Shown here: piece by piece, positions 3,107-19,115 of the stretch
Layout of the letters: each line of letters begins with the position of its first letter
Position numbering within the stretch: the first letter of the stretch is position 1
NCBI GenBank assembly: GCA_013416795.1
Contig: RQSC01000854.1
Location: 1-25,479, forward strand
Length of the DNA: 25,479 bases
Reading direction: 5' to 3'
From: Prasinococcaceae sp. CCMP 1430
Taxonomy: Eukaryota; Plantae; Prasinodermophyta
Notes under the pieces: generated by a model
What the model was told of the DNA's origin: nothing
Database searches by the model: none
Seen by the model: the letters and a program-made list of their open reading frames with translations, nothing else
Position numbers and translations under genes: made by a program

Positions 3107-3107
3107 N
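3107..3107. other. Single-N assembly gap or ambiguity
   Basis: The N at 3107 separates LRR-coding sequence from the GC-rich upstream region of the GT31 gene. Confidence 0.9.
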
Positions 3108-3289
3108 TGCGGCGCGGGCGGGCGCTTGCGCCCCAGCGCGTGCGTAGGAAGGGGGGGGGAGGGGACGTGCCAGAGCTGGAGCCGCGCGCGCGGCGGGCGG
3201 CGGTGCTGCCTGTAGGGCCGAGCGAGGCGGCGGCGCGCGCCGCTCGAGCGTGCTTGCGCTGAAGCGCGCGCAGGCGGGCGGTGGCGGCC

Positions 3290-4603
3290 ATGCCAAGTCC
3301 GATGGGACGGCGCAGACTCGCCGTCAGGGCGGGCGACAGACTGCTGATCGCCGCGGTGCTCGCTGCGGTGGTGGTGGCGTCGGCAGCAGGGGTGGCGAGT
3401 CCATCCGACAGCGGCGTGCGCGAGCTCGAGCGCGCGGATGACACGAGAGGGCGCGCCGCCGTTGCTGGTGAAGGAGGAGGGCCCCTCACGGACGCCTCTG
3501 GGGTGGAGGTGCTGATGCGCGGGGTGGTGAGCAGGGTGTCCAAGCACAAACAGCAGTCTGCAAACGACGGGGTTTCGCGGCGAAGCGCCCTCGGCGAATC
3601 TGTGGTCTGCATGCTGCCTGCCAATCGACATGAGACCAACCTAGGCGCGTGGTTCGCTGCGAACCACCGCTGCACGCGCGTGATCATTCTGATTGCCGAT
3701 CCGGGCGTCTCAGAGGGGGAGCTGCCAGCAAATGCTGAGGGCGAGCGCTGCGCTGCGGCGCAGCGGGCAGCAGAGCGGAGGAGGGCGGTGGGCGCTTCTG
3801 AGCTGCCAGATATTGAGTGCGCGACCGTCAATGTCGTTCTGCCCTCTGGACGCGCCGACTCCTCGCAGAATGTGTGGGAGAAGCTCATGGCGTCGTGGTT
3901 GTGGATGGCGCGCGCACACGCGTCGGGGCACCGCATGCTGCGCGGCTCGAGGTGGGTGCTTAAGCTCGACGTCGATGGCATCGCCCTTCCTGCCAACTTC
4001 GAAAGACTCGCGCGAGAGCAGGGGTGGGACGCAAACGCAACGACGCATCCGTGGTACGTCGGGCACACGCTGACATATCGCGTGCTGATGCAGAACGGGC
4101 CGCCATTCAATGTCGGGCAGTATGCCCTTAGCATCGGCGCCGTGCGCGCAGTAGCGCCTCACCTGCGGAAGGCCATCGCCGCGATGGACGCAATGTCGGT
4201 GAGGAATGACCCCGCGTTCCAGCAGTACAAAGAAGCAGAGGGGCTTGCTCTCATGGAGCCCAACAGCTACTGCGCAAACACGGGGGGGTCGCACGCCGAC
4301 GATTTCATCATTGCCGCCTGCCTGGGCCTCGCGGACATCCGGGCGACGCCTGCTGTCGACTCGCTCGGCCGCCACTACTTCCTGCCCTTCAACCCGCGTG
4401 CTCATCGCTGGCAACCGTACGCCGAGCACGACGCCACAAACCCCATGAAGTCATGGTTCTGGGAAGGCAAGACGCGTGCGCAGTCGGAGGAGGCGTGCTG
4501 CGCGCCGCGCGTGGTTGCAATCCACGGGTTCAAGGAGGAACGCTCGCTCCTCGAATGGGGCTTTGTGATCGACCTTGTCCAGACTTCGACTTCGTTCGAC
4601 TGA
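3290..4603 (+). CDS. Type II membrane glycosyltransferase, GT31 family (C1GALT1/fringe-like), about 437 aa
   Basis: An N-terminal TM segment (LLIAAVLAAVVVASAAGV) precedes WVLKLDVDG (DxD) and PWYVGH. Further motifs are HADDFIIAACL, DSLGRHYFLPFNP and CCAPRVVAIHG, which mirror the C1GALT1 pattern. Confidence 0.8.
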   Translation: MPSPMGRRRLAVRAGDRLLIAAVLAAVVVASAAGVASPSDSGVRELERADDTRGRAAVAGEGGGPLTDASGVEVLMRGVVSRVSKHKQQSANDGVSRRSALGESVVCMLPANRHETNLGAWFAANHRCTRVIILIADPGVSEGELPANAEGERCAAAQRAAERRRAVGASELPDIECATVNVVLPSGRADSSQNVWEKLMASWLWMARAHASGHRMLRGSRWVLKLDVDGIALPANFERLAREQGWDANATTHPWYVGHTLTYRVLMQNGPPFNVGQYALSIGAVRAVAPHLRKAIAAMDAMSVRNDPAFQQYKEAEGLALMEPNSYCANTGGSHADDFIIAACLGLADIRATPAVDSLGRHYFLPFNPRAHRWQPYAEHDATNPMKSWFWEGKTRAQSEEACCAPRVVAIHGFKEERSLLEWGFVIDLVQTSTSFD

Positions 4604-4781
4604 GGAGCGGTGCCGACCGTGGGGCAGTAGACGCTGACATGACAGTGTGATGACTCTCAGGCAAGCGCATCGTAGGATCGACAAACATGGCCGCAGTCCA
4701 TTTGCTCCGGCTCGGTCTTCATTAAAGGATGCTGTGACGCTGTGACGCTCGGGCGCGGTGGCGGCTTAGCACGCGCGGCGT

Positions 4782-5972
4782 CTATGGCAGCGCAAGCGAG
4801 CCAAGCATGGCTTCTCTTGAGGCGCCGGTCACCTCCTGGACGGCGCCCGGCTTGCCGTGCAACCACAGCCAGCCGAGCGCAGCAAAGCACGCCGCCTCGC
4901 GCGCGTCGGGAGGGATGCCGTCGCGCGCGCCGGCGCCCCTGCCCAGCGCTCGGACGGTCCACCGCTCGCCCATCTCCTCCTGCAGATACCGTAGCATCGC
5001 TGCATTATGAGCGCCGCCCCCAGCGACCAGCAGCTCGCGCGGCGCGGCGTCGCCAACGAGCCCAGCACGCCCGCACGCTCTCAACACCGCCTCGGCCGCC
5101 AGCCTGGCCGTCACCCGCGCCAGGGTCGCGCAGCCATCGGCGGCGCTCAGGCCGTCCACGTGGGCCGCGATGAGCGCCTCGCGCCGCGGAGGCCTGTAGT
5201 CCAGGCTCTCGCCCAGCGCCGACGGGCGGCACGCGTCCGCGAGCGCCACCGCGCGCGCCTCGTCGACGCTTCCCGCCAGCGCGAGCATCCCGCCCTCATC
5301 GAAGTCGACCCCGGCGGCTTGCCGGCACCAGTGATCGAGCAGGCAGTTGCCGGGGCCCGCATCCTCAGCCTCGGGCGCAGCGCCACGCTCAGCTGGCGGC
5401 AGCGCGGTCACGTTCGCCACGCCGCCGATGTTCAGTAGCGCGACCGCATCAAGTCGCCGCGAGAAGAGCAGCCTGTCAGCCGCAGGCACCAGGGGTGCGC
5501 CCTGCCCGCCCAATGCGATGTCGGCACTGCGCAGATTCCACAGCACCGGCAGGCCCAGCCTCGCTGCCAGCGCACCCCCATCGCCGATCTGTGCAGTCCA
5601 GCCCGCCGCCGGCGCGTGGCCGATGGTCTGTCCATGCGACACCACGAGGTCTACCTGACCCTCCAGCTCCTCGGCGGCCAGGAAGGCATGCACCGCGGTG
5701 GCCACGAAGCCGCTATATTCGAAGCTGAGCTCGAAGGCGTTGCGCGCGGACCCCTCCCCGGCGGCGGCGAGCCTCGCGCCAAGGCCGCCGTCGCCGCCGC
5801 GCAGCGGAGCGCTGCCGTGCGCGAGCAGCTCCCACGCGCCGCCAGCGGCGGCGGGCGCGAAGCGCAGCACGGCCACGTCCAATGCGTCGCACGAGGTGCC
5901 CGTCATGAGCCCTGCGACGGTGCACGGCTCGGAGCGCGGCCAGCGACAGAGCGATGCCAGCGAGGGCGCCAT
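4782..5972 (-). CDS. anmK: Anhydro-N-acetylmuramic acid kinase (AnmK / levoglucosan kinase family), about 396 aa, intronless
   Basis: The family motifs occur in order: GLMTGTSCDALD, SHGQT, AQIGDG, LRSADIALGGQGAPLVP, LNIGGVAN, DAGPGNCLLD, FDEGGMLA, VAGGGAHN, EAACFAALG. The first in-frame ATG is at 5972 and the stop TAG is at 4784-4782. Confidence 0.92.
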   Translation of the reverse strand: MAPSLASLCRWPRSEPCTVAGLMTGTSCDALDVAVLRFAPAAAGGAWELLAHGSAPLRGGDGGLGARLAAAGEGSARNAFELSFEYSGFVATAVHAFLAAEELEGQVDLVVSHGQTIGHAPAAGWTAQIGDGGALAARLGLPVLWNLRSADIALGGQGAPLVPAADRLLFSRRLDAVALLNIGGVANVTALPPAERGAAPEAEDAGPGNCLLDHWCRQAAGVDFDEGGMLALAGSVDEARAVALADACRPSALGESLDYRPPRREALIAAHVDGLSAADGCATLARVTARLAAEAVLRACGRAGLVGDAAPRELLVAGGGAHNAAMLRYLQEEMGERWTVRALGRGAGARDGIPPDAREAACFAALGWLWLHGKPGAVQEVTGASREAMLGSLALP

Positions 5973-6248
5973 GGAGAGCGCTGTCGCCAGAGACGACGCA
6001 CAGAGGTGGAGGGCTCTAGTCGCCCCACCCTGCGGCACTGCAGCCCTGCCACGGGCGCGTGCGGGCGAGCCCAGGCGCTCTCGCCATGCAGGGCGATGCG
6101 CGGCCTGCGGCCGCGCCGCGCTGCTGGCGGGGGCGCGCCCCGGCCAACGCAGCGCGCGCAGGCCAGGCAGCTGCCCCGCGCCACGGCCGCGGGCCACCGC
6201 AGCTGGTCGCCGAGCGAGTAGGCGGCGGCACCGGTGGCGCGGGGCGTG

Positions 6249-7961
6249 ATGGCAGGGGCGGTGGGCGGCGCCCCACCGCCTTCATGCGAGCTGGACGCGC
6301 TGGCGGACGGCGCGCTGTTCGAGCCGCTCGAGCGTGCGCTCGCGGAGGCGTGCCGCGCCGTCGGCGGCGGCGAGCTCGCAGCGGCCGCATCGCGCAAGCG
6401 CTCGCTTTTGCGGCGGCGCGGCGACGAGGATGGACCCGACTGGGAGTGGCGCGGCGCGCGCGCGGCGTTCATGTGCTTGGCGTCGATGCAGCGGCGCTTG
6501 TACGAGCGAGGAGCTGTCCGCGGAGCTGAGCCGCCGCCGCCGGGTGTGCTGTGCACCGCGGTGTCCGAATTCGGCACACGCCGCGAGAAGCGCTTCGGCT
6601 CCGCTGATGAGCTGGCGTCGGCCATCGTCGACCAATTGAGTGACGCCGTGCAACAGCAGCAAGGCTGGCAGCACGGCCTGCAGCAGCGCGAGCAGCCGGA
6701 TAAGGCAGGCGCACCAGCGGTTCGCATCGCCCGCGCTGCGGTCTGCGCGGGCGGCCTTGTGAAGGTGACAACAGGCGTGCAGCTCGAGCGCCAGCGAGCG
6801 CTGGGCGGGGTCATGTGCGCCGAGTGCGGCCGCTTCCTACGCGGTGAACGCGGACTGCGAATGCACCAGCAGGTGGCGCACGGCGCCACGTACGAGGCGT
6901 CCGCCGCTGAGGCGCGCAACGCGTGCCGCGCCCTCCAGGTGCTCTCAGGGACGGCGGGGGCTGTGCCGGGGGTGGCGGCGCAACCGAGCTCGCGTGCCGA
7001 GGCCGGCAAAGGTGGTTCGCCGGAGGGTGCGGGCACCGTTCCATCGCACGCTGCGCTCACGCAGGCGTGGGCTGCTGAGGCGCGCGCGCGCGAGGCGCGC
7101 CGCGCCTGGCTGCCACCCGCACTTGAGGCGGCGCGCACGAACGACGTGCAAGCGCTTGAGCGCTGTGGTGCCGCGGCCGCGCTCGCTGCGCGCGATCGCT
7201 TTGGCGCGACTGCGCTGCACTGGGCGGCGGGCGCCGGTGCGCTGGGGTGTGTCAAGTGGATGGTCGAGACTGCGGGCGTGGATGCTGGCGAGGCACAAGT
7301 CGGCGGGCGCGGCTGTGGCGTCGGGCGCACCGCCGTGCACTGGGCCGCACGCAACGGACACCTTGACGTGGCGCGCTACCTGGTCGAGGAGCACGGTGCC
7401 ACCGCCAACGCGGTCACCATTGATGGCACCACGCCACTGCACCTGGCCGTCTGGCGCGGCCGCCTCGAGCTCGTGCGCTGGCTCGTGCGCGACGGCGGCG
7501 CAGACCTGCATGCGACCAATGACCACGGCTGCAATGCGGCCCAGTGGGCAGCGCAGACTGGCGATATTCGCACAATAGCTTGGCTGCACGAGGAAGGCCT
7601 GGACCTGCATCTGCTCAATTCCAACGCTCACAGCCTGGTGTATAAGGCCGCCGTCAAGGGGCGCGCGCGCATGTGCCGCTGGCTCCTGCAGACCGCCGGC
7701 CTCGCTGGCGTGCAGCTTAGCGCCGACGCCGACGGTAATACGCCCGCCAAAATGGCGGGGGCGGAGGGCTACGAGCGGCTTGCGGCGTGGCTCGGCGAGG
7801 CCGAGGCCGCCGCGCGCGCGGCGCCGCATCTCGATGGCGCTGCGCTCGTGGACGCCGCTGACGCGATCGAGGGAGCGTGGACAGCAGCTACGGAAGAAGA
7901 GGACAGCATGCCTGACGCCCGCGCTCGCTGCGAAGGCAGCGACAGCGACGGTAGCTCCTAG
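6249..7961 (+). CDS. C2H2 zinc finger plus ankyrin-repeat protein, about 570 aa
   Basis: CAECGRFLRGERGLRMHQQVAH is a C2H2 finger. Ankyrin repeats include GATALHWAAGAG, GRTAVHWAARNGH, GTTPLHLAVWRG, GCNAAQWAAQTG and GNTPAKMA. Confidence 0.88.
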   Translation: MAGAVGGAPPPSCELDALADGALFEPLERALAEACRAVGGGELAAAASRKRSLLRRRGDEDGPDWEWRGARAAFMCLASMQRRLYERGAVRGAEPPPPGVLCTAVSEFGTRREKRFGSADELASAIVDQLSDAVQQQQGWQHGLQQREQPDKAGAPAVRIARAAVCAGGLVKVTTGVQLERQRALGGVMCAECGRFLRGERGLRMHQQVAHGATYEASAAEARNACRALQVLSGTAGAVPGVAAQPSSRAEAGKGGSPEGAGTVPSHAALTQAWAAEARAREARRAWLPPALEAARTNDVQALERCGAAAALAARDRFGATALHWAAGAGALGCVKWMVETAGVDAGEAQVGGRGCGVGRTAVHWAARNGHLDVARYLVEEHGATANAVTIDGTTPLHLAVWRGRLELVRWLVRDGGADLHATNDHGCNAAQWAAQTGDIRTIAWLHEEGLDLHLLNSNAHSLVYKAAVKGRARMCRWLLQTAGLAGVQLSADADGNTPAKMAGAEGYERLAAWLGEAEAAARAAPHLDGAALVDAADAIEGAWTAATEEEDSMPDARARCEGSDSDGSS

Positions 7962-8091: not shown

Positions 8092-8932
8092 TCAATCGAT
8101 CCTGAGTTTGACACCACCCGAGACGACGCAGTCAAGCAGGGCAATGACAAAGAGGCCGCATCCGACCGCCACCACCAATGCGGCGGCAACGAGCGAGTGG
8201 TCGCTCCACCCGTTCTCACCCGCCTTGAGCTTGCGGTATATACGGCCCAGCGCGTTCGGAGCCTGCCAGAATATCGACGCCACCCGTCCCACGGCGCTAT
8301 TCGGCGCCTTCCACGCCGGCACGGGGGTCTCGGCCTGCCATCCCCCTCGCGCAAACTTCAAGAGTTTCTTGAGGTCCCTACCAGCGGTGCTGCTGTACTC
8401 GACGAATCGGCCCTCTTGCATGAAGTACAAGCTAGGGAAGACTTGGACGCCCAGTCTGCGCGCGAGGATGGTCTCCTCCGCGCCGTCGATGCGCCCCACG
8501 CGAACCTCTCCGTCGAGCTCCTCTGCGAGCTTGCGCCACGTCGGCTCTAGCGCTTTGCAGTGCGTACACCACGGCGCGTACACCTCGACGAACCACGGCG
8601 ACCCATCCTGGATGTAGTCATCGAAGGTGTCCCACTTGAGGTCCACGACCTGCGCAGCACGCGGCGCGGGGTGCAGGAGCGCCACGCCAACCCGGGCGGC
8701 TAAGTGTCAGCGCGCGGCGGCGGGGCGGGGCGGACCGTGCATGGCGTAGCAATGTGCACATCAGGGCCGGCGCCTGCAAGCCACGCGGGCGGGACTTAAA
8801 GTCACGGTCGACGGGCGCGGCCCCCACCTTATCGACGCCCCCGCTCGCCTTGCTGCCGGCCGTGGCCGCAGCAGCGGCCCCCGCACAGAGGACCGCCAGC
8901 GCCCCCAACAGCACGTGGCGCGCGCGCGCCAT
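8092..8932 (-). CDS. Thioredoxin-like transmembrane / PDI-family protein (TMX-like), 2 exons: 8932-8828 and 8649-8092, about 220 aa
   Basis: Signal peptide MARARHVLLGALAVLCAGAAAA, active site YAPWCTHC, GVQVFPSL, a C-terminal TM segment and a KLRID* tail. A phase-0 intron joins the two exons in frame. Confidence 0.9.
8650..8827 (-). other. Spliceosomal intron (178 nt) in the TMX-like gene
   Basis: Boundaries are AAG|GTGGGG and GCGCAG|GTC, with a CTGAC branch point near 8710-8706. Confidence 0.85.
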
Positions 8933-10980: not shown

Positions 10981-12847
10981 TCAGGCCTCCACGATTGCAG
11001 CAGCGCGCTCGAGCCTGTCCGCGAGCTCCTGAGCACCTTCGCCGCCGACGCTGGCAACATGGTCTCGCACAAGCGCTGCCACGAAGTCGCGCCCCTTGCC
11101 GCGCAGGTCGAGCAGCTCAGCGATGTGTGCTTGCACACCCTCGTCGCCCGAGGCCCACAGCTGTGCGAGGATGCAGCCGACTAGGCGCACGCTGAAGAGG
11201 CCTCTGTCCAGCAGCTCGACCTCGCGCTGCAGGCACACGCAAGAGCTCACACCGTCAGAGTCAGTGACATCGTGCAGATGGCGCATAGAGACACGTGCCG
11301 ACGCGAGCTTGCAAGGGTATCGCAGGAGCACATGCGGCACGTCCAACACGCACTAAGTAGCAGCTGATGCGCACACGCGCGCGCGGGCGGGCGCCCGCGT
11401 GATGTCGCACCTCGGCCTCGTCGAGCCCTGCTGGCAGCGCCTTCTCCGCCGCGAAGTACCGCTCGAGATACGAATCGAGCAATTCAAACAATCTGTCGAG
11501 CTTTTCGTACTCCTGCTCGACGAACTTGGCAAGCACACGGTCGAGCCTGTCCGTGTCTTCGAGTTCGGTGGCCAGCGATGCCACGAGCGACACGCAGCGC
11601 TCGTCAGAGAGCGCCTCTGTGTCCTCCTCGGTCCTCTTTTTGCCCTTGCCCTTGCTCGCTTGCTTATGTGCTGCAGCGGCCCCCTTCCCCATGAATGCGG
11701 AGAACGTTGTACCCAGCCCACGCACGTCGACCAGGCGCTTGCACGCCGGTGCGTAGCGCGTGCACGCGAAGTCCAGAGCGCGGAAGGCGGCAACTCGCGC
11801 TGCCGGTGCGGCGTCCTTGGACCTGGCGACGATGCACATGAGCTCCATCCCCTCGGCCTCCACGAAGGCGGCCTTACCTTCGGTGCCCATGACGATGCAG
11901 CACAGGCAGTCGAAGAGGTTCTGGCAGTGCTCTTCCTCGTCGCCGCCGGCGGGTGCCTTCCGCTTATAGGGCGCGATTGCGCGCAGGATGGCATCCGTGC
12001 CACCCTTGGCGACCACCGCAGCCTTGGCGCCCTCAGCGCTCTGCATGAGGATCGCGAGCACCTCACTGGTGTACTGCTTGTTAGCATCAAAGCCCTCGGC
12101 GTTCACACGCTTGCAAGCCCAATCCACGAAGCGTGTGCCCTCGCACACAGCGGCGGCATGCTTCGGGTCGATCGACGTGAGGTTCTCCAGACAAGTCAGG
12201 CAGCCATTGGCGCCGGCGGCCTCCTGCTGCTGCGACTCATCAAGTCGCTCGAGCGTCGATATGAGGAGCTCGAGGCCGTTCGCAGCGATGATGGCATCCG
12301 CAAGGGCTACATACGCCTCCTCGTTGTCTTCGTCCTCGTCCGCGTCCTCTGCGTCCGCATCCGTGAGTTCCGCGAGCAGCGAGACGGCGCCGCACGCGAT
12401 GTCGACGTTCTCGTGTGCGAGCAGGCCCACGGCCGTCGGCACCGCACCAAGGCGCACGAACTCGGGGTATAGCTCGGGCGATGCGGCGAGCGCGCCTAAT
12501 GCTCGCACCTCCGCGTCAAGCGCGAGCTCCGAGTCCATGAACTTCTCCGGCTTGTCGGCGTAGCGCATGCGCGCCTCCACGTTGGCGTTGAGCCGTTTTT
12601 CGAACGACACGACGACGCGACGGAGCGCGCGCGCGTCGAGCAGCAGCGTGTCCTCCTCGCCGCCGCCGTCCCCGTCGCCTGCTGCCATGGCCGCCGCGGC
12701 CGCCGCCTCAGCCTCAGCGAGCAGACGCTCACCCTCGCCCTGCGCTGGCGGCGCATCACCACCGAGCACGGTCGCGACGGAGCCGTCGAACGCGGCAGCG
12801 GCCACCGCCGCTGCGGAGCGCGCGCGCTTCGCTGGCGGGCCATCCAT
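10981..12847 (-). CDS. CTNNBL1: Beta-catenin-like protein 1 (spliceosomal Prp19/NTC-associated), 2 exons: 12847-11411 and 11226-10981, about 560 aa
   Basis: Motifs include FEKRLNANVEARMRYADKPEKFMDSELALD, LLAHENVDIA, NKQYTSEVLAIL, EEHCQNLFDCLC and KFVEQEYEKLDRL, and exon 2 carries LLDRGLFSV. A phase-0 intron joins the exons. Confidence 0.95.
11227..11410 (-). other. Spliceosomal intron (184 nt) in CTNNBL1
   Basis: Boundaries are GAG|GTGCGA and CTGCAG|CGC, with two CTGAC motifs 30-40 nt before the acceptor. Confidence 0.85.
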
Positions 12848-14509: not shown

Positions 14510-17068
14510 CTAAAAGAACAGCGCTTTCCACGGCGTCGGGATGGGCGCAGGCTCGAGCCAGCCCGTCAGGAAGTCGAGGTGCTCTGTGAAGTTGGTCACT
14601 GCCATCGTGTCCTTCATGCCAGCCTTGTTGCCAATGATGAAGGTGCGCTCCTTGGGGACCTTGGCATTCTTGTAGGCGGACACATCAGTGGCGACGTTCC
14701 CATACGCTGCCCAGCTTTCGACGCCAATGCTCGCGAGGTGGTTCATGACGCCTACCTTAAAGTCGCGCACGAACTGATAGCCCGCGAAGGTACCCTTGCC
14801 CGGCAGCGCCGCCATCTTGCTGGTGGTGAGAATGACGGGCCCAGGCGGGAAGCCGTGCTTCGCGAGCCATTCAAAGGTCAGATTGTAGAAGCTCCCTTGG
14901 CGGCCAGTCAAGTAGACTGGCAGGTAGCCCTTGGCTGCCCAGTAGCGGCACAGACTCAGGCCGTTGGCGCGCGAGACCGCGTCGAACGCGCGGGCCTGGC
15001 CAGCGAAGTCGTAGATCATCTGCCCCACCATCTGCTCGTCGCCCACGTTGATAGTGCCGTCGAGGTCGAGCACGACCGCACGCGTGCCCTTCTCCAGGAT
15101 ATAGAGCGAGCCGTGGCCGATGGTGTTGTCAGATGCGACGACGGCGCGGATGGCATAGTGACCCGGCTGGGTGGAGACGAAAGGCGGGCATTCGTATCGG
15201 AGGATCCCCTTGTCATTCGTGTACACCGTGTCGAGGAAGCGATACGAGTCCATGCTGTCGTGCTGCTTGGCGAAGAGGTGCACGGCCTCGTTCTTGAGGC
15301 GCCGCGATCCATACTCGAATCTCCCCCACACGTACGGCTTGGTGCCCTCGTCGCCAACGCAGAAAACGTTGTTGTGCGAACACAACCAGTGATTGTCCTC
15401 GTTGATGGCGCGAAGCGGGCGTCGGGTCATGTCTCGCAGCCTTCCCTCTATCATCATGAGGTCCGGCCCATTGTAGTTTCCGCCATCGCGCGTGTCGCGC
15501 ATCGGCGTGAGTGTCACGCGTACGGTCATGAGCCCGACCTCCTCGGAGTTAGCGTCCATCTGCGGCTGCACGACGCGTGAGTTGATCCACCCCTTCTTGC
15601 TGGCACTCAGACTCACGCTCTTCTGCGAGCCAGCGTCTTTGACTGTGCCTCGAGCGGGGTCGGCAGACGAGGTGTCGGTGGCGGTGGCGCCCCCGGCGCT
15701 CGTGGTGCTGTCCCGCGCGCTGTCCGTAGCGGAGGGGCCCTGCCTGACCGTCTCCCGGGTCGTTCGAAGAGCCACGTTGTGCAGGACGCCCTCGTCATCG
15801 ATCTCGATGTTCTTGGCCGGAAGCAGCTCCATCTTCAGCGTTTGGGCGCCGTAGTCCAGCTCGCCGTACGGGATGGAGGCGCCGGCGACGGGCGCCGATG
15901 CACTGCCGCCGCACGTGATCGCGTTAAAGCACGCGTGGCACGGGCAGCAAAACACCTTGAGCATGGTGCCCAAGTTGCCCGTGAGGTCGACGATTTTCTT
16001 GAAGAACCCTCCGACAGCCTTTTTAGCCGTGTTGGGCTGCTTGAAGATGATGTGAATGGGCCGGTCGCTCACGTTCACGACAAAGTACGCCGCCCCCTCA
16101 AACTCGAAGTGCGTGTCGAGCCCTGCTTGGGCAAAGGTGTCAAGCTTGCGGAGGGCGCTCTCGTCCTCAATCGATCCCTTGGACGTAACCGCTTGGATCT
16201 TTGCGCTCTTCGCTTTTCCTTTGGTGCTGATTTTTCGCTGCGCGCCGATTTTGGTGTGGCACTTCAGCGCGTTGGCATCGCTCTGCTCACCGCCGACGGA
16301 CACGACCACTCTCGGCTTGCGCAAGCGCGCCGCCGGTACCACGCCGCAGACGTCGAGAATCTCGACCTTGACGAGCGTAATGAAGGGCTCGGTTGTGCCC
16401 ATTTGCTGAAAGTTCAGTTCGGGCAGCGGCACCAAGGCCCTCGTCGCCTTCTTGACCTCGTCGGAGGTGATTTCACCGCTCGCCTCTTCGGCCTCCAGCT
16501 CCTGCTCCGCCTCGAACACGCCGTCTTTAAAATGCCGGAAGGACAAAAGCCGCCCGCAAGGATGCTTCTTGCGCTCCGTGTCCGCGCCATCCTGCGCCTG
16601 TCCGTAAGGCGTCGTCGCGTTGTAGAATGCACACGCAGCGGACATCGGGCGCGAGCGCGCGTTGTGTGCGCGCGCGCACGCGCGGGGAGAGGCGGCAGAT
16701 GTGCGTCAGCAACCGCACCGCAATCAATGCTGACCTCTAGCAAATTGTGGCGAACGGACGTTGCGCCGAGGCCATTGGCACACGATGGAGGCATGGCGAC
16801 CACTCTATTTTGCTAGGCCCACCTCGTCCTTTGCCTTGGTCTTCGTTTCCCCCGCCTCGGCAGTGCCCGGCGGCATGAGCTGCCGCATGAGCTCTTGGTT
16901 CGCCCGCGCCACGCTCGGCGACACCTCGGGCGGGTGTGAAATCTCGGCGGACGCCACGCGGTGCGGCATTGCGTCCGGCGCCGCCGGCGCCGCGGGCGCG
17001 CCACCGCCCGCCGCCCCCGCCCCCGGCGACGCGCTCGCCTCGGGCTCCTTGCTCGAAGCCGCCCCCAT
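14510..17068 (-). CDS. N-myristoylated C2-like plus Nir/RdgB-type LNS2 (lipin-like HAD) domain protein; 2 exons: 17068-16823 and 16597-14510, about 777 aa
   Basis: The C-terminal part has WGRFEYG...NEAVHLF...YTNDKGILRY...GHYAIRAVVASDNT...GTRAVVLDLDGT, YLTGRQ, WLAKHGFPPGP and AYGNVATDVSAY...VPKERTFIIG, the LNS2/PITP signature. Exon 1 starts MGAASSK and is joined by a phase-0 intron. Confidence 0.85.
16598..16822 (-). other. Predicted spliceosomal intron (225 nt) linking ORF 16805-17068 to ORF 14510-16645
   Basis: The donor is GAG|GTGGGC and a CTGAC lies near 16709-16705. There is no AG in the following ~105 nt until GGACAG at 16598, and splicing there is in frame. An alternative in-frame acceptor is at 16592. 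Confidence 0.7.
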
Positions 17069-17161
17069 CGCGCCGCCCGCGTCCCGCCACGCCGAGCAGG
17101 CTCCAAGGCGATGGGGGACGAGACGCAGTGTGGCGGCGCCGCTCGAGCGGCGCGCGACGAC

Positions 17162-17192
17162 GAAAAAATCGCCACCCGCGCGCGATTTTTTC
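17162..17192. promoter_or_regulatory. Perfect 11-bp inverted repeat GAAAAAATCGC-N9-GCGATTTTTTC in the divergent promoter
   Basis: The arms at 17162-17172 and 17182-17192 are exact reverse complements. Confidence 0.55.
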
Positions 17193-17595
17193 CACCGCCA
17201 AACTCAACGACAATTCATCTCCGCCGCTCATCAGAATCATCATCACATCAGGATTTCGTTTTTTTTTGTCAGGCAGCCGACGGGTCAATGCAATGCTCAA
17301 AAGACAGTGCGAGGGACCGCCGATTCGCAGCCGTGGCTTTCCAATTTTCCATGGATTTGATCGAGCGGATTGCCCGCATTGCAACACCCTCCCACCCGCG
17401 CACAGCGCCGCTACCATCGTCGGCGTTGGCACGATATGATGCGCGCCACGCGATACGTGGGCGTCGCCACCGAGGCCGACGCCGAGGGGCCGGTCAGGAG
17501 AAATGCCACGTGCGGGCAGGCGTGCGGGCAAGCGTGCCGGCATGCGTGCGTGCGCGCGTGCGTGCGTGTCCGTGTGTGTGTGTGGTGGTTGTCTC

Positions 17596-17654
17596 CGTGC
17601 GCGCGCGTGCGCACGTGTACGTGTGCGTGTGTGTGCGTGCGTGTGTGTGCACAC
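17596..17654. repeat. 59-nt strictly alternating pyrimidine/purine (GT/GC/AC) tract
   Basis: The tract reads cgtgcgcgcgcgtgcgcacgtgtacgtgtgcgtgtgtgtgcgtgcgtgtgtgtgcacac. A second shorter tract is at 17541-17569. Confidence 0.9.
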
Positions 17655-17798
17655 TCGCGTCGGCGGCATGTGAGCCACAAGGGACGCACGCGTGCGCGTG
17701 CCACAGGGAGCCCATCCGCCAGCACGCCCATCCCCGCGGCACGTGCTGGCCCACGCGCCCGTTACGCGTCGTGGACACCCGCGCGGTCGCGACGCGAG

Positions 17799-19115
17799 AT
17801 GCGAGAGTACAGCGCCGCCGGCGCGCGTGTGGACGGCGGCGACGCGCGCGTGGTCGCCTTCATCAACAAGCGATCTGGGGGGCAGCGCGGCGAGGCGGCT
17901 CACGCGGCGCTCGTGGAGGCCATCGGCGCGGACAACGTCTTCACGCTCGTACCGAAGGAGGGCGGACCCAGGCCCGGCCTGGAGGAGCTCGCGCGGGCGC
18001 ACTACGACAACAAGGGCGCGGGCGACGGGGTGGTGGTGCTCTGCTGCGGAGGCGATGGAACGTTCAATTGGATATCGACGGTCCTGCTGGACCTCGAGGC
18101 GATCAAGCCGGCAGGCGCACCTGCTTTTCGCCCGGAGCTCGTGACTGTGCCGCTGGGCACGGGCAACGACCTCTCTCGCGCGCTGGGCTGGGGAAAGGGG
18201 TACCCGGGCGACGCGGGCCTGAAAAAGTTCTGCGCGGATGCCCGCGCGGCGACGCGCGGGCCGAGTATCGACCTGTGGACGGTGCGCTTTGCCGCCGGTG
18301 ACGCGAAATACCCCCAGATGGAGAACTACTGCTCGGTGGGCGTGGACGCGGAGGCAGCCAGGAGGTTCGCCGAGGCGCGCGAGGCGAATCCGGAGGCGTT
18401 CTCAAGTCAGTGGAAGAACAAGTCGGTGTACGCGCAGACTGGGGCCAAGCTGGCAGTGACGGGCGCGGCCACGCTCAACTACAAGGTGAAGGCGTTGCAG
18501 ATCGCTGGCGAGGACGTACCGCTCCCGCACGGATGCAAGAGCATCGTGGTGCTCAACATCGCGTCCTTCGGCGCGGGGACCGACCCATGGGGCAAGAAAG
18601 GCGTGATCCCGCATAAGAAGAAGCTCGAATCGCCCGCGATCAACGATGGGCTGCTCGAGGTGGTCGCGCTCGGGTCGATCGCAGACGTGCCCAAGTCGAT
18701 GCTCACTAGCAAGATCTTCGGCTACGGCGTGCAGCGCGTCGGCCAGGGCGACTCGGTGCGCATCGAATTCGAGAGCGCGGCGGCCGCCGCGGAGAGCCAC
18801 CCGTCCTGCTGCGGCCTCATGACAAAGAAATCGACGCGCAAGGAGCTCGCTGTGCAGGTCGATGGCGAGGCGTGGGCGTTCCCGTTTGCGGACGAGGTGC
18901 TCGAGATTTCGCTCAAGGGGCGCGTGGGGGTGCGCTTCGGGCCATCGCACGCGCCCGGGAAGGGAATCAGCGCAGGGCAGGCGAAGGCTGCGCCAGAGCT
19001 GGGCTGGGATCCCGCGGCACTCGAGAAGAAGCGCGCCAGCGATGCTGACAAGGCTGCGCAGCCGCACGAAGGGGACGCTGAGGGCGATGAGGACACAACG
19101 ACGAAGAAAGAGTGA
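17799..19115 (+). CDS. DGK: Diacylglycerol kinase (catalytic plus accessory domains, no C1 domain seen), about 438 aa; start may lie further upstream
   Basis: Motifs include VVAFINKRSGGQRG, LCCGGDGTFNWI, VPLGTGNDLSRALGWG, NYCSVGVDA, IVVLNIASFGAG, INDGLLEVV and VQVDGEAW. Confidence 0.93.
   Translation: MREYSAAGARVDGGDARVVAFINKRSGGQRGEAAHAALVEAIGADNVFTLVPKEGGPRPGLEELARAHYDNKGAGDGVVVLCCGGDGTFNWISTVLLDLEAIKPAGAPAFRPELVTVPLGTGNDLSRALGWGKGYPGDAGLKKFCADARAATRGPSIDLWTVRFAAGDAKYPQMENYCSVGVDAEAARRFAEAREANPEAFSSQWKNKSVYAQTGAKLAVTGAATLNYKVKALQIAGEDVPLPHGCKSIVVLNIASFGAGTDPWGKKGVIPHKKKLESPAINDGLLEVVALGSIADVPKSMLTSKIFGYGVQRVGQGDSVRIEFESAAAAAESHPSCCGLMTKKSTRKELAVQVDGEAWAFPFADEVLEISLKGRVGVRFGPSHAPGKGISAGQAKAAPELGWDPAALEKKRASDADKAAQPHEGDAEGDEDTTTKKE

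Follow-up and report, generated by a model that had tools for sequence, protein, structure and literature searches.

The window analysed here, a 25,479-nucleotide stretch of DNA from Prasinococcaceae sp. CCMP 1430 (contig RQSC01000854.1), was found to carry an intact, intronless gene of the AnmK family on its minus strand (4782..5972), an assignment confirmed by the open reading frame and its translation, the Pfam match, the solved relatives and the predicted fold. The gene is nuclear and algal, and is not a contaminant. Taken as a whole, we consider it reasonably probable that this is an expressed and functional nuclear gene, gained horizontally and encoding a cytosolic AnmK-family anhydro-sugar kinase that would salvage a peptidoglycan amino sugar; within this reading, the substrate, its physiological source and the compartment are the elements that we infer.

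An intact AnmK-family gene in algal nuclear DNA

The coding sequence starts with an ATG at 5972, comprises 396 codons and ends with a stop codon at 4782-4784, giving a product of 396 aa. This product scored 230 bits with the Pfam AnmK model PF03702 (E 6.1e-68; curated cutoff 24 bits), the match taking in positions 3-364 of the model's 367, and its best solved relatives were those of P. aeruginosa AnmK (E 7.7e-40), among which 3qbw was used for alignment. An AlphaFold model of the algal protein (pLDDT 74.8, pTM 0.77) showed the two-domain ASKHA-type fold and superposed on AnmK structures 8bre_A and 3qbx_B (TM 0.80/0.87, E ~2e-22). When this model was used in a structure search, the top 18 matches were all AnmK, with levoglucosan kinase further down. 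No intron interrupts the gene: the frame is unbroken, and the transcript contigs at 4360-5759 and 5879-6057 run colinear with the genome. As the original prediction had proposed, the AnmK-family motifs were all found in this single intronless frame, including D204 within D-A-G-P-G-N and E359 within the E-A motif, and 19 residues were counted ahead of the G-L-M-T-G-T-S phosphate-binding motif, where some 15-20 had been estimated. The protein missed the equivalog cutoff of every NCBIfam AnmK model (best NF007148, 257 bits against 387), and the Myxococcota relatives described below likewise fell under the NF007148 cutoff (291-299 bits).

The surroundings of the gene are those of a eukaryotic chromosome. 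Only two Ns are present in the window, both single-base (1392 and 3107), and one N-free stretch joins the AnmK gene to CTNNBL1 (11264-12847; PF08216, E 2.6e-121), to a eukaryotic diacylglycerol kinase (DGK) gene and to a thioredoxin-domain gene (8095-8685; PF00085) whose intron (8648-8825) was spliced out in two RNA assemblies; an LNS2 gene also lies in the window. The gap-free linkage to intron-containing eukaryotic genes that had been claimed from the letters alone was thus borne out. On its 5' side lies an ankyrin-repeat gene on the plus strand (ATG at 6249, from the ORF list and Pfam ankyrin matches), arranged head-to-head with the AnmK gene across a divergent intergenic region of 276 bp (5973..6248). 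GC content here is 67-69%, in keeping with the 69.8% published for Prasinoderma coloniale, which is very probably the species concerned, and the third-position value (GC3) of the AnmK gene (0.84) is close to that of the adjacent gene (0.80). Moreover, a Tara Oceans scaffold showed the identical gene order at 99% identity, the head-to-head ankyrin-repeat neighbour included, and a second algal lineage was found whose AnmK is 83% identical (dN/dS 0.16) and is encoded on two independent marine metagenome contigs, 22-31 kb long, next to UFD1, ABA4-like, HSCB and DUS3L genes. The two protein clusters contained 13 and 9 environmental variants. From these data, purifying selection appears to have maintained the gene since its acquisition, in two algal lineages at the least.

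An intronless gene with bacterial relatives could, in principle, have come from an associated bacterium through contamination or a chimeric assembly. This explanation was rejected as having a negligible probability: the gene is linked without Ns to eukaryote-only genes and a spliced intron, its GC3 is host-like, the Tara scaffold independently repeats the arrangement, and in the second lineage the gene again sits between eukaryotic genes on two independent contigs. In addition, its identity to bacterial proteins did not rise above 49% anywhere in a set of 1.84 billion representatives. The independent scaffold and the neighbours in the second lineage agree on the linkage that the original prediction had left to be verified, and the location in algal nuclear DNA that it proposed stands.

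Transcript, N-terminus and probable compartment

The gene is transcribed: it was covered by contigs assembled from culture RNA and from marine metatranscriptomes, colinear with the genome. At the 5' side, the culture contig (5879-6057) and the marine contig (5878-6048) ended within 10 nt of each other and defined a 5' untranslated leader at 5973..6057 (minus strand). At the 3' side, a contig spanning 4360-5759 with 0 mismatches joined the coding sequence to a flank (4360..4781, minus strand) into which the 3' end of the convergent neighbour (stop 4603) reaches, this neighbour being itself covered by another contig (3400-4740); since RNA contigs carry no strand information, these positions place the 3' end of the AnmK transcript only inexactly.

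The frame remains open for 75 codons upstream of the ATG at 5972, a stretch in which no in-frame ATG was found. Similarity to the 83% identical relative begins exactly at this ATG and is lost upstream, both as DNA and as protein. The first beta-strand of the kinase, according to the model, lies at residue 17, as in the bacterial homologues. No transit peptide was recognised: conservation sets in at the ATG, the kinase core follows from residue 17 on, and no splice joint was seen further upstream. The enzyme is hence probably cytosolic, as judged from the start of conservation with its relative; this agrees with the earlier remark that no plastid transit peptide was evident, the cytosol being the default reading.

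It could be argued that the enzyme acts instead in the chloroplast interior, alongside the Mur enzymes, after import without a classical transit peptide or by means of an unannotated upstream exon. The probable substrate would arise at the chloroplast envelope, and the 75 upstream open codons are rich in Ala, Arg and Ser. We consider this very unlikely, because that stretch has no ATG and is not conserved in the relative, the two genome-colinear RNA assemblies end some 80 nt upstream of the start codon without a splice joint, and the position of the first beta-strand matches that of the bacterial enzymes.

Active site, gating loop and candidate role

Bacterial AnmK (E. coli b1640, P. aeruginosa PA0666; EC 2.7.1.170; PDB 3QBW, 8BRE, 8CPB) belongs to the same Pfam family as the algal protein and shares its two-domain fold (TM 0.80/0.87), with a similar length and no added domains on the algal side. 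The algal protein differs in being only 32-33% identical, nuclear-encoded and under the NCBIfam cutoffs, and in lacking the P-K-S-T-G-R-E gating loop. The residues reported as critical in P. aeruginosa AnmK for ATP binding, 1,6-anhydro-N-acetylmuramic acid (hereafter anhMurNAc) binding and catalysis are S12, D14, T97, R129, N168, D182, D191, F202 and E326, with T97 contacting the N-acetyl group and R129 the lactyl carboxylate of anhMurNAc (10.64898/2026.03.13.711553). All nine were kept in the alignment (S27, D29, T116, R148, N187, D204, D213, F224 and E359, respectively). The codon of D204 (5361..5363, minus strand) corresponds to that of Asp182, the catalytic general base (PMC10570956), in a column that was 100% conserved across 171 bacterial AnmK sequences, and that of E359 (4896..4898, minus strand), in R-E-A, corresponds to Glu326, which binds Mg2+ and the gamma-phosphate (PMC10570956), in a column conserved in 99% of them. 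The ATP-site set is present (S27, D29, D213 and F224, plus the G-G-G-A-x-N motif at G318-N323). Of the 52 columns at least 90% conserved in those 171 sequences, 51 were kept, the one exception being a serine replaced by A252, inside the gating loop.

The equivalent of that loop spans codons 247-259 (5196..5234, minus strand) and aligns with L229-241 of P. aeruginosa AnmK, which in the closed state of the enzyme occludes the anhMurNAc site (PMC10570956). The canonical P-K-S-T-G-R-E was kept in neither algal lineage, where another sequence was found instead, and in the Myxococcota relatives the loop takes yet a third form, G-x-S-L-A-R-E. Model confidence was low at residues 257-262. The loop being so divergent, the alternative that the original prediction had allowed for, namely that another anhydrosugar is the substrate, has to be weighed.

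According to this alternative, the same fold and chemistry would serve a 1,6-anhydro sugar other than anhMurNAc, be it levoglucosan, anhydro-GlcNAc or some unknown product of algae or bacteria, with no role in muramic acid metabolism. Besides the loop, divergent in both algal lineages, the score below all AnmK equivalog cutoffs would fit with it, as would the levoglucosan kinases among the fungal family members and the tick enzyme discussed below, from which it seems that a transferred enzyme can shift in specificity. Against it, T116 and R148, which would hold the N-acetyl group and the lactyl carboxylate, were kept, although these two and N187 are also kept in levoglucosan kinase and appear to be required by the family, so that they do not discriminate between the two enzymes. 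G156, H119, Q128 and the C-terminal T-G-A motif are of AnmK type in the algal protein, and levoglucosan kinase differs at each of them in pairwise alignments. The fungal enzyme (Lipomyces starkeyi LGK, PDB 4ZLU, 4YH5) has the family, the fold and the catalytic Asp and Glu in common with the algal protein but matched it more weakly (E 6e-30, against 8e-40 for AnmK; target TM 0.70 against 0.87), and in neither sequence, fold nor site residues was the algal protein closer to it than to AnmK. Judged from the alignments and the model, the protein resembles AnmK and not levoglucosan kinase, in its score as well as in its fold and residues. Furthermore, bacterial sister proteins with a related loop variant sit in ordinary bacterial genomes. 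We therefore regard a different substrate as rather unlikely, though the most probable of the alternatives considered.

Based on the conserved residues, the enzyme would bind ATP and a 1,6-anhydro sugar, most probably anhMurNAc. D204 would activate a water molecule, the anhydro ring would be opened and the gamma-phosphate would be transferred to O6 with the aid of E359 and Mg2+, yielding MurNAc-6-phosphate. Its role would be the salvage of the amino sugar freed by lytic transglycosylases from a presumed chloroplast peptidoglycan or, less likely, from bacterial wall fragments in seawater. All ten core peptidoglycan synthesis enzymes have been reported for P. coloniale, in a genome paper that does not mention AnmK (PMC7455551). 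In bacteria, AnmK-MurQ fusions were found inside NagZ-containing operons, which reflects the usual coupling of the pathway. As a tentative proposal, possible but less than even in our estimation, the host would salvage the chloroplast's own peptidoglycan in its cytosol, with AnmK performing one step: envelope lytic transglycosylases would release anhydro-muropeptides; after trimming of these, anhMurNAc would be phosphorylated by AnmK; and through a GKRP/MurQ-type etherase the amino-sugar pool would regain GlcNAc-6-phosphate. Peptidoglycan itself is not known to have been demonstrated in this alga. A cytosolic kinase would also require the sugar to leave the chloroplast envelope, a step for which no transporter is known.

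Work on chloroplast peptidoglycan has dealt almost wholly with synthesis genes, and a 2023 review of the plastid wall mentions neither recycling nor turnover nor AnmK. An AnmK that is intact, expressed and selectively kept, in a green lineage among the earliest to branch off, offers a concrete marker of wall turnover that can be assayed. Use of anhMurNAc by the enzyme would imply that products of lytic transglycosylases exist in the cell, and would be indirect evidence of a real, dynamic chloroplast wall. Should the salvage route prove true, it would be the first evidence that a plastid wall undergoes turnover as bacterial walls do, with recycling by enzymes from non-cyanobacterial donors.

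Origin of the gene and related acquisitions

An exhaustive search of 1.84 billion representative proteins retrieved as close relatives only Myxococcota-type clusters (47-49% identity) and a protein of Mesostigma (48%), all others being at or below 42%; a search of the Atlas with the window protein returned generic AnmK clusters only. The nearest relatives form an AnmK subfamily of marine Myxococcota metagenome-assembled genomes (MAGs; e.g. JBDQPD010000098, JAYZBQ010000056, CAXGWI010000062; 40-49% identity), which shares with the alga the rare signature residues C28, V111, L-W-N-L at 144-147 and L291. In a mixture-model tree, the alga and this clade grouped with 97/80 support. The algal pair was sister to the Myxococcota clade and not nested inside it, and the alga holds just 8 of the 19 clade-signature residues, on a long branch. 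The bacterial members sit in conserved bacterial synteny, a string of accD, Mur-ligase-like, AMIN protein, GATase, AnmK and sigma-70 genes that is not shared by the algal locus. Compositional attraction behind the grouping was considered and judged unlikely because of the GC values (MAG loci 56-64%, picocyanobacterial contigs 60-64%, alga 69%) and the rare residues shared within the grouping. On these comparisons, the gene was most likely gained horizontally from marine Myxococcota-like bacteria, or from a recent source common to both, and since the algal pair is sister to the clade, the transfer may have gone either way. Horizontal acquisition, which the original prediction had raised as a possibility, is the best-supported origin, and suggests that picoalgae exchange genes with marine Myxococcota-like bacteria.

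Alternatively, the gene could descend from the cyanobacterial ancestor of the chloroplast, as several further wall genes of the alga do, with the Myxococcota proteins as recipients or only apparently close. Two FastTree runs (24 and 32 rows, local support 95-96) placed a picocyanobacterial AnmK group, identified by NCBIfam NF007145 above cutoff, Atlas taxa and synteny, just outside the alga and Myxococcota clade. In the mixture-model tree, however, this neighbourhood was unsupported (56/20), compared with 97/80 for the Myxococcota grouping, and picocyanobacterial identity was no higher than that of many other bacteria. Constraining the algal pair to picocyanobacteria gave a tree 34.9 log-likelihood units worse, which did not reach formal rejection (AU p = 0.056) in a test that is weak both ways, picocyanobacteria being the only cyanobacteria sampled. 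Thus, of the phylogeny originally envisaged against bacterial and cyanobacterial AnmK, the bacterial part gave a well-supported placement and the cyanobacterial part an indecisive one. A tblastn search of a plasmid collection for labelled cyanobacterial AnmK gave 122 records, none of them cyanobacterial among the matches listed. Altogether, with picocyanobacteria as the cyanobacterial sample, a cyanobacterial origin is disfavoured by these trees and identities, and we consider an endosymbiotic descent of the gene unlikely.

With the alga, a phototroph joins ticks and anaerobic ciliates among the few eukaryotes that have an acquired anmK. Tick AnmK was horizontally acquired from Chitinophagaceae and is expressed; the recombinant enzyme yields MurNAc-6P, its site is almost intact and its activity is lower by a factor of about 500, and the authors of the study suspect that the substrate has changed (bioRxiv 10.64898/2026.03.13.711553). 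In tick and alga alike, a eukaryotic nucleus harbours a domesticated bacterial anmK that is expressed and whose active site is largely intact. They differ in the donor lineage, and the tick gene gained an intron and altered the Asn that corresponds to N187, which the intronless algal gene retains; the tick, moreover, has no peptidoglycan-bearing organelle. Anaerobic ciliates, likewise eukaryotes with a bacterial anmK, laterally acquired a NamZ, anmK and murQ set that was read as serving the digestion of bacterial prey (PMC13198582). In contrast, the alga is a walled, non-flagellate phototroph with wall-synthesis genes of its own predicted.

Closer to the present case, the streptophyte alga Mesostigma viride, for which a full peptidoglycan gene set has been reported (PMC7455551), encodes an AnmK of the same subfamily (EP00899_P013388). 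Unlike the Prasinoderma-type protein, it was nested inside the Myxococcota clade (98/94) and holds 15 of the 19 signature residues, and a single green-algal AnmK clade was rejected (AU p = 0.007). These comparisons suggest either that Mesostigma acquired its gene separately or that its assembly is contaminated. The Mesostigma gene model is 664 aa long and contains long inserts, which are probably unspliced introns.

Family membership and active site

The AnmK open frame spans 6197-4782 on the minus strand, with its first ATG at 5972, and encodes a protein of 396 residues that matched the Pfam AnmK family (PF03702) end to end (E 6.1e-68; 230 bits vs a cutoff of 24). The closest solved structures by sequence were the AnmK enzymes of P. 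aeruginosa (E 7.7e-40) and Shewanella (5e-37), with a weaker match to fungal LGK (6e-30). The protein scored under every cutoff of the NCBIfam AnmK equivalogs, the best being NF007148 (257 bits vs 387). When family conservation was scored in an alignment with 171 bacterial members, the common residue was present in the algal protein at 51 of the 52 columns conserved at 90% or more.

In Pseudomonas AnmK, Asp182 is the general base and Glu326 holds Mg2+ and the gamma-phosphate (PMC10570956). Asp182 aligned with algal D204, inside D-A-G-P-G-N, and Glu326 with E359, inside R-E-A; the open frame, the PF03702 match and this alignment to solved AnmK confirmed the original prediction of an AnmK-family gene with these Asp and Glu motifs at 4782-5972. 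Nine residues have been structurally shown to be important in the Pseudomonas enzyme (S12, D14, T97, R129, N168, D182, D191, F202 and E326), T97 being assigned to the N-acetyl group and R129 to the lactyl carboxylate (tick AnmK preprint 2026, 10.64898/2026.03.13.711553). All nine were kept in the alignment to that enzyme, as S27, D29, T116, R148, N187, D204, D213, F224 and E359.

An AlphaFold model built from an eight-sequence alignment (pLDDT 74.8, pTM 0.77) had AnmK structures as its first matches (8bre_A and 3qbx_B; TM 0.80 by query, 0.87 by target), LGK ranking after them with a target TM of 0.70. Fungal members of the family are levoglucosan kinases, and in pairwise alignments the algal protein carried the AnmK-type G156, H119 and Q128 and the C-terminal T-G-A motif, positions at which LGK differs. 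The single unconserved column of the 52 (S to A252) falls within the substrate-gating loop. This loop matches Pseudomonas L229-241, which covers the anhMurNAc site when the enzyme closes (PMC10570956), and its canonical P-K-S-T-G-R-E is replaced in the algal protein. The variant is common to both algal lineages, the present one and a second known from marine metagenomes, and Myxococcota relatives carry a third version.

Nuclear context, transcription and protein start

Eukaryotic neighbours of the kinase gene in the window include CTNNBL1 (PF08216, E 2.6e-121), a diacylglycerol kinase with accessory domain, and genes for LNS2/PITM-type, ankyrin-repeat and thioredoxin-domain proteins. In the last of these (PF00085 at 8095-8685), a 178-nt GT-AG intron on the minus strand (8648-8825) was skipped in two assemblies from the organism, showing them to be RNA-derived. 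Ns in the window were single bases at 1392 and 3107, with no gap runs, so that the predicted gap-free linkage to intron-containing eukaryotic genes was borne out. GC3 was 0.84 in the kinase gene vs 0.80 in the adjacent ankyrin gene, and overall GC was 67% in the window, which fits the 69.8% published for Prasinoderma coloniale, very probably the species at hand. On a 10-kb Tara Oceans scaffold (L001), the gene is 99% identical and has the neighbours found in the window, in unchanged order (thioredoxin, ankyrin, AnmK, 437-aa ORF). In the second lineage (83% protein identity), two marine metagenomes supplied the gene on contigs of 22 kb and 31 kb, in a eukaryotic context with synteny unlike that of the window (UFD1, ABA4-like, HSCB, 2-oxoacid dehydrogenase E2 and DUS3L-type genes). 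The two algal protein clusters held 13 and 9 environmental variants, and dN/dS between the lineages was 0.16 (dS 0.66, dN 0.105), indicating purifying selection. Taken together, the eukaryotic context, spliced intron, uninterrupted sequence, GC3, Tara synteny, second lineage and dN/dS make a contaminant or chimeric origin of the kinase gene very unlikely.

Transcripts matching the locus were found both in a culture-derived RNA assembly (a 1,400-nt contig matching 4360-5759 colinearly and without mismatch, and a second at 5879-6057) and in a marine metatranscriptome (4691-5116, 5097-5276 and 5878-6048), these assembled contigs showing presence, and neither level nor strand. The 5' contigs of both RNA assemblies end at most 10 nt apart, some 80 nt before the ATG, with no splice joint. 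No in-frame ATG was found upstream of 5972, though the frame stays open for 75 codons. Aligned to its 83% relative, the locus becomes near-identical, with synonymous differences, from exactly the ATG onward; upstream of it the two are unalignable as DNA and their translations are unrelated. The model places the first kinase beta-strand from residue 17, a position preceded by 0-27 residues in bacterial homologues. Conservation from the ATG, the short 5' contigs, the lack of an upstream ATG and a core starting at residue 17 therefore leave no room for a transit peptide, as originally proposed, and by default the kinase would be cytosolic.

Several minor features were observed around the gene. 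A 23-codon uORF (6017-6088, minus strand) starts from an ATG that precedes the kinase start and is out of frame with it; it lies just past where the two RNA contigs end on the 5' side (6057 and 6048) and may thus be untranscribed. The ankyrin-repeat gene (6249-7961, plus strand) is expressed and head-to-head with the kinase gene, at an ATG-to-ATG distance of 276 bp; several of its RNA contigs have loose sequence at their ends (6467, 6909, 7080 and 7823), as if from paralogues or variants. In the shared promoter region, the alignment of the window (about 6150-6260) with L001 (6665-6800) breaks down some 180 nt before the kinase start codon, in what looks like a structural variant; the kinase coding sequences of the two differ at 6 of 1,191 bases. 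Convergent with the kinase gene, a 440-aa ORF (3281-4603, plus strand) has no Pfam match, a 1,342-nt RNA contig covering it (3400-4740) and the 437-aa counterpart on the Tara scaffold; its product is an expressed protein of a family unassigned by Pfam. Loose RNA contig ends were also seen at 3126 and 3249, near the N at 3107, and the LNS2/PITM-type and diacylglycerol kinase genes are head-to-head at 14510-19115.

Relatives and origin

A word-based search returned the 99% and 83% algal-type matches, followed by a drop to a 42-45% set including a Myxococcales MAG protein; a Mesostigma viride protein was also among the matches. Searched exhaustively with HMMER, a set of 1.84 billion representative proteins yielded 7,491 family members, with three close clusters besides the alga's own, two Myxococcota-type (47% and 49%) and one from Mesostigma (48%), the rest being at most 42%. 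Among 185,579 species genomes, the best loci belonged to five Myxococcota MAGs (40-51%), ahead of those in Calditrichota, Elusimicrobiota, Planctomycetota and others (27-39%). The Myxococcota-type genes belong to a conserved, compact string (accD, Mur-ligase-like, AMIN-domain protein, GATase, AnmK, sigma-70) and are thus genuinely bacterial. In three contigs of marine Myxococcota MAGs (L085, L086 and that of protein P0004), anmK overlaps the GATase gene and lies between the genes for the AMIN-domain protein and a housekeeping-type sigma-70; neither murQ nor nagZ was adjacent to anmK there.

In a 64-row phylogeny (IQ-TREE, LG+C20+F+G4), the two algal lineages paired with full support (100/100) and grouped at 97/80 with a clade of Myxococcota plus Mesostigma (itself 100/96), within one sub-clade of which the Mesostigma protein was nested (98/94). 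A single green-algal clade was rejected in a test made after the tree was seen (AU p = 0.007). The bacterial clade has 19 rare signature residues, of which the alga shares 8 and Mesostigma 15. On these sequences, our reading is that horizontal exchange with Myxococcota-like marine bacteria probably occurred, separately for Prasinoderma and Mesostigma, with either direction of transfer on the Prasinoderma branch compatible with the tree. An endosymbiotic origin from cyanobacteria is disfavoured. Picocyanobacterial AnmK sequences (recognised via NF007145 above cutoff, Atlas taxa and synteny) lay nearby in FastTree, but this neighbourhood lacked support under the mixture model (56/20), and forcing the algal pair together with them cost 34.9 log-likelihood units, a difference short of formal rejection (AU p = 0.056). 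The endosymbiotic reading keeps some probability because the cyanobacteria in the tree are a single group, picocyanobacteria only. The horizontal acquisition originally suggested thus stood in the grouping with Myxococcota, whereas the deeper placement relative to picocyanobacteria was without support.

The Mesostigma protein (P0019, EP00899_P013388) is a 664-aa AnmK model in which three long insertions, shared by no homologue, are probably introns left unspliced; its nesting in a marine Myxococcota clade points to an independent transfer or a contaminated assembly.

Likely function

Because the active site is conserved, standard AnmK chemistry is the likely activity of the algal enzyme: an Asp-activated water would open the 1,6-anhydro ring as O6 is phosphorylated by ATP, with MurNAc-6-phosphate as the product. 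An altered substrate in place of anhMurNAc is nevertheless in play, given the divergent gating loop and the precedent of a tick AnmK that is about 500-fold less active and whose authors suspect a substrate shift (10.64898/2026.03.13.711553). According to the same preprint, eukaryotic anmK transfer was previously unreported before that acquired by ticks; anaerobic ciliates acquired anmK with NamZ and murQ, which was read as prey digestion (PMC13198582). The alga's anmK is likewise probably acquired, here in a phototroph whose chloroplast is predicted to be walled. The gene is a domesticated bacterial AnmK in that setting, the mechanism not being new, and it makes plastid-wall turnover testable. 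In the literature covered, which is incomplete, neither AnmK nor recycling of the wall was mentioned for P. coloniale or, more generally, for plastid peptidoglycan.

The reported gene content of P. coloniale includes the full set of ten core enzymes for making peptidoglycan (PMC7455551), a biological setting that fits an AnmK role with standard chemistry. In the proposed route, envelope transglycosylases would release anhydro-muropeptides, which would then be trimmed, and cytosolic AnmK with an etherase would return GlcNAc-6-phosphate. Bacterial wall fragments taken up from seawater are a possible second source of the sugar. The coupling of kinase and etherase is well grounded in bacteria: murQ adjoins anmK in Deinococcus, and in several bacteria AnmK and a GKRP/MurQ-type SIS etherase domain are fused in one gene (686-728 aa; L094 6001-8103, P0024, P0085 and P0237). 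In the bacterial locus L094, the operon that holds the fusion also encodes a peptide-binding protein, a GH3 (NagZ-type) hydrolase, an acetyltransferase and a beta-lactamase-fold protein.
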